NCBI GenBank assembly: GCA_964247055.1
Contig: OZ176053.1
Location: 7,812,001-7,876,000 of the forward strand
DNA from: Paragordius varius
Taxonomy: Eukaryota > Animalia > Nematomorpha
Reading direction: 5' to 3'
DNA length: 64,000 nt
Part shown: in pieces, positions 6,401 through 17,160 of the stretch
Numbering within the stretch: position 1 is the stretch's first letter
Layout: each line of letters begins with the position of its first letter
Translations under genes and position numbers: made by a program
The notes under the pieces: model-generated
Database searches by the model: none
What the model saw: only the letters and a program-made list of their open reading frames with translations
What the model was told of the DNA's origin: nothing

Positions 6401-9400
6401 TATAAATATATAGATTATGGAAAAATGGTTTTTTTATTTAAAATTTTATATTTCCATGCCTCCTGAGATAATAGTGAAACTTTGTAGTGTTTTCACATGG
6501 TGGGAATTTGACCGCATTTTTTTGTAAAACCTCGGAACTTATTAAAGTATATTCTAAATATAAATTATTGAATACCAAAATTATTTTATTTTTACTGCTA
6601 GTCAACCATTTTTCCCTGTACCGTAAAAACAAATGTATATTTTCAAACAATATTTCGTTTTTAGGTTGGTCGGATGTCAGCAATTTTCAAGAGATTTGTG
6701 TCATTTTAACATCGGCCATTAATCGATTCATGTCGCACGATGACCATTTAGATGACACACCAAATCACACATTAATGGAAGAAAATAATTCGCCAGGATC
6801 TCCAACGACTCAATTAGAGCGCTCAGATACGCCTATTATTGATACAGGAACTGTCGATAAAGTTGAATTGGTCACATTGGCTATCATAGCTGTGAGAACG
6901 ATAACCCATTTGGTAAAAGCTAATATGTTTGTAGTATGAATCATTCATAGATGATGGATTTTATAATTATATAGTTTATAAAGCACGAAATTAGTCAGTG
7001 AATACTATTGACGAAGGGTTTAACATTTATAATTTCAGTTTATACATATATTTTTCAGTTAATTTTCTATCTAATTTTCGATTATTATTTCACGGATTTA
7101 ACAACTGTTATAAGACAATTAATATTTAGAATGGAGTAATATTTTCCTCAATATCAAATTTTTAATTTATTTAATTTACTAAAATCATTAAAACGTAATG
7201 TAAGCGATTCCTTATCTGGTTTATACTAATTATTTTTATTATCAATATTTTTTTGTTATGTAGATTTTATATACTACGCTTAAGCCGAATCCCGGTGATC
7301 CTCTCTATTGTGAATATCCTGAAACTTGCATCCCAACATGCGATCTTTTTAAACGGATTGATATTAAAAAACGGTACATATTAATAATACGGCCCCAAAC
7401 ACATAAAATTGAACATTGAGTCAAATGTGAGAAACAAATCTAGCTGCACAATTTAAAATACTGATTGTTTATAATAAACTCGATTAAGAAATTTCAGTAG
7501 TTATATAGATTGATTTTGAGGGGAAAACCCAAATTAATTAAGATCTTTTATCTTATATACCATTTTTATAATATAAAAACTAAATTGGTCGTTATTTACT
7601 CAAGAATTGTTAAAAAGATTAGGTTAATGTAAACCATATCGATTAATTTTATAAATTTTGCCTTATAAGGTAAGTTTTTTTAATTCAGGTACAACGCTCA
7701 ATTAGAAAGTTTGTCATTATATTTTGGCCTTGATAATCGCAAAAATGGAAAGTTTTGGTCAGAGGAGATACCCTCGTGGCCTTGGAGATGCAATTTTTAT
7801 CCAACCCACAACATGGGACAAGTATAATATTAATAATAATATGTGTTTTGATTTTAAAAATTTAAAGGAATTAAAAGCTACTATTAAAACTTCGGTTCAA
7901 ATTGGAATTTGAGTTAGGATTTTTAAAAAACTACTGAATGAGACGGTCCTTATTTAAATGTATGCTTCTATCCTAATAAAAATAATATAAATATGCCAAA
8001 ATATTTAAATAAAATTTTGTTTTGAAAAAAAAGTTACATGTCAAACTACCGCGACGCCATTTTTGTTTTTATAAAATTTTTGCAAAATATCGTCTTCATT
8101 TTATTTAAGGGTAAAATTAAAGCTTATTTTTATTTAAATTACATTTAACATTGATAGAAATAGAAAAAGCGGTTAATTTTGTATTATTTTTCAATTTTAC
8201 CATTGCACACATCTCACGTTGACCAAATTTTTGCCTTTCGGTTTTAGCTTAAAATATGTAATATCAAGTATTTTTGAATAAAATTTTTTATATATTCCGG
8301 TTTATTAATGTTATATAAGTAAATTTGCCATGGTTTCGATTCCTTCCATATTTTTTAAAGAATTCAATTTAAAACCGGCTTGGGGTATTTAACTACCCCA
8401 ATTTGAATCGAGGGACTAAAATGAATGTGTTAAATCCAAGTGGAATTGTCGTAAAAATTATGGGTAAATAGATATATTTTACGGATCAAATTCGAAAATA
8501 AATGTATGTTGAATAATTAATTTTAATTGGAACCGTTTTGCAACGGTAAAATGGCATACCATATTTTGCAATTTGTGGATTTATTTTTTGTGGTTATATG
8601 TTAGCATATATGACAAACTCACGAGAAAACTATTTTAAACAATGAAATTATAATAAATATTTTTAGATAATAAATCATCGGCATAGTTTTCTAAAACAAT
8701 GTGAAGAAATAAATTGGACCAAAATTAAAACACGGTTTCGCTTCATATTTGGACAAATTTTAATGAATGATAATTAAGCCGCGCCCCTAACACTACCTTT
8801 TTGGCCCGAATTATTTATTATATTTTTTGATGTACTTACTTGAAGTATGATCTGCTAATGTATCAAACAGCTATTAAACTTTGAGCGGTATTATGGCCCT
8901 TGAAGCAAGGAAAATATTTTTTGGCTGCCTTTTACATTTTTTGGTTGAGTACCGCTGGTCTAAATTAACCAAATAAAAATTTAGATATCGCTTAAACACG
9001 CTTGGCTTGTCATGGGCTCAAAATGTGTCGTTAGATCATCTCTTTCCGAAGCTGATCAACGAAAATTAAATTTATCATCCCCAAATCAGGGAATCGATCA
9101 AGATCCCAATGACACTGTTTTGATCGCATTGGGTAATTAATTATTGACAAAAAATGTTCTGGGGTTTTCAAAAAAGATTAGTACTTATAAGTTTTACTGT
9201 TATTAATGAAAAAATATATATTTATTTTCATATACAATAAAAATAATTATAAGGACAAAATATATAAAGCTTAATAAACTATCATTTTTTCTATATAATT
9301 AATATATTAACAATTGTGAAATATGAAATTATGTGCGCGACCAATTTACATCTCTGTTCTTAGATAGGTAATATTAAAAATATTGAGGTTTTTAAAATAG

Positions 9401-13979: not shown

Positions 13980-15481
13980 TTATTGAAATAAATATTCGTC
14001 AATCCATGAAATATCAATGGGAGTATCACTGTCCACCAATTCAACATTATTTATATATTCATTAATAATGTGTGCATTATCCTCATAAAGTTTAGAGATG
14101 GTACAATTTTCTTGAACCAAAATTTCAGATGACATTGGTAAAATGGGTTGAAGAGATGTTTGAATATTTGGTTTTTCTAAAGCTAAGCTTGTCAAGTTTT
14201 TGTTTTCAACCGTTTTTGTTGGATTCAATGAATTATGCTGCTTATGGTTGTAATTATGTTCTTCGTGAACCAGTGTGATGAGCGAATGGCCATTCGTTGT
14301 ATTACATGGTTCTTTTGTAATAATGTCTCGCTAAATTATAAAAACGATAATATATCACATTATGTAATAAAAGCGATATAGTTGTTACTCCAATATTTAT
14401 AATATAAAAAATGATAATTTACGGATATTAACAATTAAAATGAAAGCAAACATAAAATAATCTCTAATATCAAGAAAAATATGTTATATTTATTTTGTAT
14501 TTTGGTTGAGAAAAAATAAACCCGTTTTTATCTAAATGTTTGATCTATAATCATTTTTTAGAGAAAAGCAAAGCTAATCATAAAATAAACCTTTTTCAAA
14601 TATTTGCCCCATTTTTTAATAATAAATATAGATATATATTCCGGCTGTAAATATTTTTAGATGTATTTATTGAGTAACAAAAAAATATATTATATACCAC
14701 TGTTTTATATTCATCTTCGGATTCATATCCAGAAGATCTATTGCATTCTTCGGAAAAAGAATTGTCTGACAATGAGTGGCTGGGTGAGCATATCCATTCT
14801 TGTTTAATTGATGTTGATAATGATGATTTGGAATAGTTGTCTGGTGAATGTTTAGCTCGTTTTGCGCGAATACGTTGGTTTGTATCAACGCAATTATCAT
14901 GAATATCATAAGTACTGGCATTTGGGATAGCAAAGGAATTCCCCATCGATTGTGCCGCAAAGAAATCGTAGTTCCACCAATTTTCTCGTTCCGTAAATGT
15001 TCGTTTGCATGATTTAATGATTGGGATGCCCTCGGCTGGGGTCGGAAAAACTCGGCAGGTTTTTCAAAACTATCCCTATCATTTTGATCAGCATTTTTCA
15101 AGCAATTCCCTTGAAGATCACAATTGTCTTCATGACTAGTTTGAACTTCGATTTCTAGTGCGGGTAATTGATTGTTATCCATTTCATTTGTTTTGATGTT
15201 CGAGCTTTTTCGTTGGTTCAAAGTACTCAATATTTTAAAAAGTTTCATATTTTGTTCCATAAGTACAAGTTTCTACAAGATTTAAAATATATAAACTTCT
15301 TGTTCCATCGACATAACTTTCATTTCTAATTCTTTAATATAGGCCTTTTTACGGTCTCTAGCAATCTGGGCTGATATACGGTTATTCATTTTTCTTATAA
15401 TTAAAAAATGTAAAACCTTCTCAACAGCTTCTCTTCAAAACTCAAGTCCTCTTGCATCATAATATTTGGATCAATTACCAT
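13980..15481 (-). CDS. XBP1: X-box binding protein 1 (bZIP UPR transcription factor), with unspliced and IRE1-spliced frames
   Basis: Exons 15481-15417, 15393-15297, 15272-14698 (contains IRE1 intron 15055-15036) and 14330-13980. The bZIP LSFEEKLLRRKMNNRISAQIARDRKKAYIKELE matches XBP1 LSPEEKALRRKLKNRVAAQTARDRKKARMSELE. The unspliced frame has a hydrophobic HR2-like segment (PLLSQMPVLMIFMIIALI). The spliced frame has IKQEW..SPS..SD..SGYES and HEEHNYNHK motifs. Confidence 0.92.
15023..15076 (-). other. IRE1 dual stem-loop; 20-nt unconventional intron at 15055-15036
   Basis: mRNA sense: GAAAAAC-[CUG^CCGA]-GUUUUUC (7-bp stem, 7-nt loop) and CCC-[CAG^CCGA]-GGG, with a possible outer GGGAU/AUCCC stem. 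Removing the 20 nt gives an open frame ...EKPAEGIPIIKSCKRTFTERENWWNYDFFAAQSMGNSFAIP that joins ORF 14946-14596. Confidence 0.88.
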
Positions 15482-16140: not shown

Positions 16141-17160
16141 TTAATCTATTTTTATAACCTGATACATTTTCTAGGTTTTAGCTTTTAGCCATGAATAAAT
16201 ACACAAAAAAAGTAGTATTTTTATAGTGTTTTAGTTTAGGGCTTTTGACCTATTTAAAAACGACTTTTATACTTTTGTGCTAATTTATATCAAATCGTCC
16301 GATTGGCCCACATTATGGTATGAAATTTTTAAGTGGAGGAAAGGATGCCATATCATCTACATTTAAAGATCACATTTGTGTATTCTATCATAAATGTCGT
16401 CCCGAAAATCTCAATTTAGGGTCATTAATACGATATAACATAAAAATTCCGAGCGTATAATATTATCTGTGCTAAAATTGTTTTTTATGATTTATTAAAA
16501 CTTCATGACGTTTCCCCTTTTTTCCGCGATAATATATTGGGTAATTTTACCAGAGCTTAATCTTGTAAATAAACTTAGGTTAAATAATTACCATGCACTG
16601 TGTGTAATAGATATAAAAGCTTATGCAATTTTGAGACTTCTATAAATTTTGAGACACTTTTACACTTTTTATTAAATAATTTTATATTGCGCCTAAAAGA
16701 CTAAACAAAGTAAATTTTTAAAAGTTTATTGCCCTAAATAATTAAGATATTCGATTTTCAATTCGCTCTGGGATTAAATCTATCCCAAAGAGTCAGAGAG
16801 CGTTAAATCATTTGATGTACTTATTTGGAGTATAAAATTGAAAATTCATCAAACAAGAATGAATTTTATCGGTATTCCCTTGGAACCGAAAAAAATTTAG
16901 CCATTTAAAATTTCTGGTTTGTTTCAATGTTTAAGATTATGATCAAAATAAGTTGTATTTCATAAATGCATATTTTGCCTCAAAATAATTAATTTTGTTG
17001 GATCATATATAAATTTATGTATAACTGTAAACGGCATAACTACCTTTACTAAAATTGGAAGAAAAATATTATGATGAATTATCTATTATCTGATAGATAA
17101 TGTGTTAAGATCATAATGCTTTGATTTTAAGCCTTACGAGTGACTGATTTTTCGTTTTTG

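Follow-up and report, generated by a model that had tools for sequence, protein, structure and literature searches.

The unconventional introns that IRE1 excises from xbp1 and hac1 messenger RNAs (mRNAs) differ in length between lineages, with 26 nucleotides (nt) in mammals, 23 nt in Caenorhabditis elegans, 19 nt in Candida albicans and 20 nt in filamentous fungi, the fungal 20-nt introns being flanked by CUGCAG on both sides (PMC2606855). The loops in which these introns are cut have also been described (the scissile bond is written here as ^). Human IRE1alpha recognizes a 7-nt loop, CNG^CAGN (PMC8674358, PMC2952871), and three of its nine sites mapped in vitro lie one base away from CUGCAG (PMC2952871), whilst a consensus over 34 metazoans reads C(C/U)G^CAGC (PMC4687415). 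Point-by-point mutagenesis of the HAC1 loop gave the motif CNG^(C/A)NGN for wild-type yeast Ire1, in which position +2 is free (PMC8104961). The 5' site of Saccharomyces cerevisiae HAC1 is G^CCGUGAU (PMC6627864), and Neurospora hac-1 is spliced at CUG^CUG (PMC4488935). Here, a 64-kb stretch of the genome of the horsehair worm Paragordius varius is considered (GenBank contig OZ176053.1, positions 7,812,001 to 7,876,000; hereafter the window, whose numbering is used throughout), the minus strand of which carries a small bZIP gene with the layout of XBP1. Within this gene, positions 15055-15036 very probably represent a compact, 20-nt IRE1-type intron of an animal xbp1, with CNG^CCG loops, the removal of which would open the frame of the spliced product, XBP1s. 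This reading draws on the sequence, its predicted structure, the reading frames, a related species and the presence of the enzyme genes; cleavage, ligation, dependence on stress and the downstream exon structure are predicted from the same material.

The predicted element, together with the hydrophobic segment encoded behind it, consists of the following features.

15036..15055, minus strand: predicted IRE1-excised unconventional intron, 20 nt (CCGAGUUUUUCCGACCCCAG), between the cut positions of both loops and inside the RF04247 alignment
15045..15065, minus strand: 5' splice-site hairpin, 7-base-pair (bp) stem GAAAAAC/GUUUUUC with 7-nt loop CUG^CCGA (sequence, fold, Rfam alignment)
15029..15041, minus strand: 3' splice-site hairpin, 3-bp stem CCC/GGG with 7-nt loop CAG^CCGA (sequence, Rfam alignment, fold)
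15018..15081, minus strand: whole bifurcated stem-loop including the central exon-exon stem (full-length RF04247 match, folds)
14883..14939, minus strand: hydrophobic HR2-like segment IPLLSQMPVLMIFMIIALI, in the unspliced (XBP1u) frame only

Read directly along the minus strand, the order is ...GAAAAAC-CUG^CCGA-GUUUUUC-CGA-CCC-CAG^CCGA-GGG.... The 5' stem is perfect over its 7 bp, from G15065-C15045 through to C15059-G15051, and encloses the loop C15058 U G15056 ^ C15055 C G A15052, in which the cut is predicted after G15056. In the second loop, C15038 A G15036 ^ C15035 C G A15032, it is predicted after G15036, leaving between the two cuts the 20 nt from 15055 to 15036 (20 mod 3 = 2). Around the scissile bond both 7-nt loops keep C at -3, G at -1 and G at +3, and both are compatible with the motif CNG^(C/A)NGN (PMC8104961). 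The two hairpins are held on a central exon-exon stem, UGAU.GGGAU (15081-15072) paired with AUCCC.AUCA (15027-15018), which is present in all folds and closes the bifurcated stem-loop.

The strongest single argument for the intron comes from the reading frames. From 15272 onwards, 201 codons can be read in the unspliced frame without a stop. In the XBP1s frame, a TGA occupies 15066-15064; directly behind it, 7 nt ahead of the 5' cut, this frame becomes open at 15063 and remains so as far as 14599, a run of 155 codons. In this AT-rich window the median stop-to-stop run is 8 codons, and only 16 of 9284 runs reach at least 121 codons. Given two frames of such length against a median of 8, a switch between them is needed within about 30 nt, and it is in that stretch that the twin loops lie; excision of the 20 nt connects the 201-codon frame with the 155-codon frame. 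The unspliced frame also encodes IPLLSQMPVLMIFMIIALI, the top 19-residue Kyte-Doolittle window (2.35), about 40 residues past the splice site. A role for this segment in membrane targeting is assumed by analogy with mammalian work, and its confinement to the unspliced frame is as would be expected of XBP1u.

A scan of both strands of the window for paired CNGNNGN loops, each on a stem of 3 bp or more and 15-30 nt apart, yielded the 15055-15036 pair alone. Composition-matched shuffles gave an expectation of 0.07 twin sites per window, and none of 200 shuffles contained a pair that satisfied a stricter definition, in which one stem had to reach 6 bp and the length had to be 2 mod 3. The Rfam family RF04247 (bZIP non-canonical Hac1/Xbp1 intron) spans 15081-15018 end to end, at model positions 1-72; the alignment scores 27.6 bits, with E = 0.035 when 4 kb are compared with 4227 families. 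In the local fold of the exon ends after removal of the 20 nt, CUG^CCG lies in a loop of 13 nt rather than 7 nt, which a G-U-rich prolongation of the central stem closes; this weak prediction is in line with the published suggestion that splicing products escape recutting (PMC4687415). In these respects a first-pass annotation of the window, made from the sequence alone, stands: it had proposed that an animal gene of xbp1 type contains an unconventional, IRE1-type intron, which agrees with the loops, the sole twin site, the RF04247 alignment and the frames; its coordinates, loop sequences and 20-nt length are all exact on the minus-strand reading; and the excision that it described does open exactly the XBP1s frame.

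Further support comes from a second horsehair worm. Of 1.84 billion proteins searched with the 32-residue bZIP exon, one gave a significant match (E = 8.7e-6, 78% identity), namely XP_065315686 (P0001) of Gordionus sp. m RMFG-2023, annotated as an "uncharacterized protein". The corresponding genomic locus (L004, OX940784.2) was reached via a second gene model of that species, P0002. At the colinear site, Gordionus reads AAAAUC-CUGCAGA-GAUU...UUCCC-CAGCAGA-GGGAG, which gives a predicted intron of 23 nt (L004:6679-6701) with the canonical animal loops CUG^CAGA and CAG^CAGA. The 3' stem and the frame of the loop are kept (UUCCC-CAGCAGA-GGGAG), the second pair of the 5' stem is A-U in one species and U-A in the other, and the central stems differ in sequence with pairing retained in both. 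Dropping the 23 nt gives the same frame as the GenBank gene model (EGEYNNEENHTIK...), and in both species P-A-E-G is read across the ligated junction. The Gordionus XBP1u frame likewise has a hydrophobic segment just after its splice site (ALLMNNSLFLMLFLFSFVI, 2.09). Outside the bZIP the two proteins are unalignable: pairwise comparison of the frames that follow the site detected no significant similarity, nor did that of Paragordius exon 4 with the Gordionus C-terminus. At the nucleotide level, blastn between the loci is significant in exons 1 and 2 only, the IRE1 site being colinear at noise level (E = 0.86). The support from Gordionus is thus positional and structural: the same element is found in the same place.

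In having 23 nt and A at +2, Gordionus agrees with what has been described for animals; in the Paragordius varius lineage, both the shortening to 20 nt and the C that occupies +2 of each loop would thus most simply be derived states. Relative to Gordionus, the intron has lost one codon and each loop has undergone an A-to-C exchange; in the unspliced frame, the codon loss turns E-I-N-F-F-P-Q into E-F-F-R-P-Q. Within each species, the six bases that begin at the cut-site G are identical at the two splice sites, GCCGAG twice in Paragordius (15029-15056) and GCAGAG twice in Gordionus (L004:6675-6710), so that the exact deletion is not placeable from cDNA alone. The two loops of each hairworm intron seem to evolve in step.

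The GenBank gene model of Gordionus, P0002, reaches the XBP1s frame by means of a spurious 44-nt GT..AG intron (L004:6658-6701), the 3' end of which is the IRE1 3' cut, and this artificial intron omits THKP/CILKENPAE..., whilst the RefSeq models (P0001) contain XBP1u only. The true frame switch of Gordionus is the predicted 23-nt IRE1 intron at 6679-6701. The RF04247 cut-off misses the introns of both hairworms (window 15018-15081 and L004:6656-6717), as short AT-rich stems are penalised.

The enzymes required by such an intron are encoded in the Paragordius varius genome (110.6 Mb in 44 contigs), which was searched as a whole. The RNase-domain family identifies a single IRE1 locus (G000:C1, ~4195288-4197000), and the gene for RtcB, the animal exon ligase, lies at G000:C6:4252771-4262260. 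The RNase core of this IRE1 contains DLRKFRDY...LRDLLRALRNKKHHY, and one RNase exon reads DWSRALDVELKKDLRKFRDYRTDTLRDLLRALRNK. Two RNase exons align gap-free with human IRE1alpha and are nearer to the human than to the yeast chains (31.8 versus 20.3 bits and 39 versus 29.6 bits), whilst another exon, DVSDLIEK..., searched alone against the PDB, had no match. The Tyr, Arg, Asn and His of the RNase site and the neighbouring Lys are all conserved (the Y of FRDY, and RNKKHHY). The three dimer-interface positions on which stringent or promiscuous cutting depends in PMC8104961, matched to the residue names given there, are occupied in the Paragordius enzyme by Q, D and K, as in the type found in human and Schizosaccharomyces pombe, with the D read, in part presumptively, across a splice site.

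Taken together, these elements suggest the following course of events. The unspliced mRNA would yield XBP1u, with its bZIP domain and hydrophobic HR2-like segment. Under stress of the endoplasmic reticulum, the single IRE1 would cut each 7-nt loop (CUG^CCGA and CAG^CCGA) after the G in third position, the central exon-exon stem keeping both loops side by side, and RtcB would ligate the exon ends. The loss of 20 nt would then shift translation into the 155-codon frame, with a probable further exon, to give the activator XBP1s. Such an intron would have arisen in this lineage from a canonical 23-nt CNG^CAG intron by the loss of one codon and one A-to-C change per loop, and the resulting length and loop base are within the range that IRE1 enzymes are known to accept.

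A number of observations weigh against this interpretation. The 3' stem has just 3 bp and its register is ambiguous, with four C facing three G. The predicted fold is no more stable than those of shuffled sequences (z = -1.43), and with the loops forced open the canonical structure reaches -18.0 kcal/mol, against a minimum free energy of -19.7 (a difference of 1.7 kcal/mol). The twin-open-loop form is a minor component, at about 3% of the predicted ensemble. The comparison with a covariance model, which had been proposed as a check, upheld the element in the extent of its alignment and not in its score, as 27.6 bits falls below the gathering threshold of 41 bits. A scan of the whole genome with RF04247 was empty at E <= 10, the 15081-15018 site included; the model alone is consequently insufficient to find the xbp1 site, and it also finds no better site elsewhere. 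As for the host gene, the protein nearest to exon 2 is labelled "uncharacterized", its matches in the PDB and the protein Atlas are generic bZIP or CREB/Jun-like, and no named XBP1 was matched in word, PDB or Atlas searches. Finally, no animal IRE1 that cuts CNG^CCG was found in the literature covered. The intron call depends on context, not on the Rfam score alone. The Gordionus element, with canonical loops, also fails the RF04247 threshold at 31 bits, from which it follows that the shortfall reflects short AT-rich stems.

Some of the same observations would be accounted for if the hairpins were relics, with the C at +2 and the 3-bp stem weakening cleavage and the IRE1 splicing of xbp1 lost or poor in this lineage. 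The sub-threshold Rfam score, the weak 3' stem with its low predicted open-loop occupancy and the strong divergence of the protein outside the bZIP are all consistent with such decay. Against this, each loop retains the three invariant bases, the IRE1 and RtcB genes are intact, and overlapping frames of 201 and 155 codons switch exactly at this point in a sequence whose median run is 8 codons. Moreover, the Gordionus site scores just slightly higher and folds no better; as this canonical-loop relative does little better, low scores reflect AT-rich stems, not decay, and a silent site is considered highly improbable. It could also be supposed that the real intron has 23 nt and that 3 nt were lost from the assembly, as the intron contains T5 and C4 runs where the longer Gordionus intron has T6 and C4. 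However, a clean loss of 3 nt that spares both frames and both hairpins would be unlikely as a sequencing error, the perfect 7-bp 5' stem uses exactly the five U residues present, and the same stretch contains many further substitutions between the species, owing to which the length difference looks evolutionary. An assembly artefact is, on this evidence, scarcely credible.

A different alternative accepts the intron and concerns the enzyme that would cut it. The first-pass annotation had raised the possibility of an altered IRE1 specificity, according to which the IRE1 of this lineage reads position +2, its preference has moved from CAG to CCG and the targets of its motif-directed mRNA decay (regulated IRE1-dependent decay, RIDD) would carry CNGCCG loops. 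In favour of such co-evolution, C occupies +2 in both Paragordius loops and A in both Gordionus loops, a joint change that it would explain; A at +2 is, furthermore, highly conserved (upper-case) in both loops of the RF04247 consensus, and is present in the 34-metazoan consensus (PMC4687415) and in the human RIDD motif (PMC8674358, PMC2952871). Nevertheless, the RNase core is of human IRE1alpha type at every position checked, including the Q, D and K of the dimer interface, and +2 is free in yeast mutagenesis (PMC8104961). Neurospora hac-1, with U at this position in CUG^CUG, is spliced (PMC4488935), so +2 is tolerant there too. Given one substitution in each loop, the same base would appear in both by chance about 1 time in 3, and neither change alters an amino acid in the spliced frame, nor does the 5' change in XBP1u. 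As the RNase core is human-type and yeast Ire1 takes any +2 base (PMC8104961), a changed specificity is unneeded and unsupported, and inspection of the RNase domain lent this part of the annotation no support; co-evolution of enzyme and site is regarded as improbable, the shared unusual base of the two loops being the single observation that still speaks for it. The explanation preferred here is thus still a compact intron cut by an IRE1 of ordinary type.

The gene that contains the element extends from 15481 to 13980 on the minus strand, in a window with a GC content of 23-36%. Its remaining parts are listed below.

15417..15481, minus strand: xbp1 exon 1 (MVIDPNIMMQEDLSFEEKLLRR), from a presumptive ATG at 15481-15479 to EEKLLRR
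15394..15416, minus strand: spliceosomal intron 1, GT-AG, 23 nt; position matches a 36-nt Gordionus intron, L004:6066-6101
15297..15393, minus strand: xbp1 exon 2, bZIP basic region (KMNNRISAQIARDRKKAYIKELEMKVMSMEQE), identified by Pfam
15273..15296, minus strand: spliceosomal intron 2, GT-AG, 24 nt; position matches a 42-nt Gordionus intron, L004:6199-6240
14701..15272, minus strand: xbp1 exon 3, with zipper, linker, IRE1 site and dual-coding region (open reading frame 14667-15260; 3' end at 14701 presumptive)
14331..14700, minus strand: predicted spliceosomal intron 3 (GT...AG, 370 nt), from a phase-0 donor in the XBP1s frame to a phase-0 acceptor before a 116-codon open frame
13980..14330, minus strand: exon 4, the putative C-terminal part of XBP1s, 116 codons with an acidic end, ...VELVDSDTPIDISWIDEYLFQ (open run; stop at 13982-13980)

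The EEKLLRR motif and the position of intron 1 are common to Gordionus P0001. The first two spliceosomal introns are ultra-short, with 23 and 24 nt as against 36 and 42 nt in Gordionus. Exon 2 matches the Pfam families bZIP_1 (3.3e-8) and bZIP_2 (1.2e-6), and downstream of the IRE1 site in exon 3 both the XBP1u and the XBP1s frames are open. Intron 3 and exon 4 are predicted from the frames only; a 56-nt alternative intron 3 (14700-14645) was set aside, as it yields a short hydrophobic tail and leaves the 116-codon frame unused. Protein searches were made exon by exon from this gene model. Exon 3, in the XBP1u frame, had no match in the protein word search, and Gordionus P0001, used as a word-search query either whole or as the bZIP region alone, retrieved only the two Gordionus models. 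The sequence EEKLLRRKMNNRISAQIARDRKKA resembles the basic region of human XBP1. The proposed orthology with XBP1 is one of architecture and of this basic-region resemblance, not of a named match. Upstream of the gene, at 16349-16420 on the minus strand, there is a sub-threshold Rfam match to the C/D-box snoRNA sn3071 (22.8 bits, where 40 are required), which is probably due to chance.

If the interpretation given here is correct, the natural range of animal XBP1 introns would be widened to 20 nt and to a base other than A at +2 in both loops, with the known mechanism unchanged. The site would also constitute a natural test of how animal IRE1 reads +2, which bears on motif-based prediction of RIDD targets. 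Were this IRE1 to prefer CCG, for which the prospect is slim, both the splice motif and motif-directed mRNA decay would have drifted away from the CUGCAG rule that is held to be general in animals; under that reading, no animal would have a shorter functional XBP1 intron than this one of 20 nt. In practical terms, the Rfam threshold misses the introns of both hairworms, automated annotation of such genomes will not report the element, and annotators of AT-rich invertebrate genomes should seek it by context. A literature search for a 20-nt animal XBP1 intron returned fungal cases only, the main survey (Hooks and Griffiths-Jones 2011) lying outside its coverage, and the peptide word ARDRKKA had no match in that literature; the 20-nt length and the non-A base at +2 are likely to be new for animals, with priority unproven.

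Among the described systems, the metazoan XBP1 intron is resembled in most respects. The host is a bZIP gene, with the site in the same place downstream of the zipper. Two 7-nt loops, each with its cut behind the third base, belong to a predicted bifurcated stem-loop, and the length of 2 mod 3 leads into the activator frame. A hydrophobic segment is encoded in the unspliced frame, and the genome contains a human-type IRE1 and the RtcB ligase. The Paragordius element differs in its length (20 nt rather than 23 or 26), in its C rather than A at +2 in both loops and in the brevity of its 3' stem (3 bp). It departs from the metazoan consensus C(C/U)G^CAGC not only by the C at +2 but also by an A at +4 of both loops and an A at -2 of the 3' loop, these last two differences being common to Gordionus.

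The hacA/hac1 introns of filamentous fungi (Aspergillus, Trichoderma) are likewise 20 nt long, and their two hairpins also stand next to each other with scarcely any spacer between them (PMC2606855, PMC6627864). In contrast, their flanks are CUGCAG rather than CNGCCG, the host protein is of the fungal Hac1 type and the ligase is the tRNA ligase Trl1 (PMC6627864), where the Paragordius genome has RtcB. As the sister lineage has 23 nt, the length shared with fungi is convergent. The term fungal-like, used in the first-pass annotation, consequently applies to the length and not to the loops, given the CUGCAG flanks of the fungal 20-nt introns (PMC2606855); the comparisons quoted there, with the 20 nt of fungi (PMC2606855, PMC4488935), the HAC1 5' site (PMC6627864) and the metazoan consensus (PMC4687415, PMC8674358), are correct.

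In the 5' site of S. cerevisiae HAC1, the scissile bond is likewise followed by CCG at +1 to +3 (PMC6627864), and both this site and the Paragordius loops fit CNG^(C/A)NGN. However, the yeast intron is 252 nt long, pairs with the 5' untranslated region and has a different sequence at its 3' site, such that CCG occurs in one of its two loops and in both of those of Paragordius. Neurospora crassa hac-1 provides an experimentally confirmed natural site with a base other than A at +2 (PMC4488935), although it is fungal, its intron has 23 nt, the base is U rather than C and only one loop is affected. The Paragordius element thus falls within the variation of the wider Hac1/Xbp1 family and outside the pattern described for animals.

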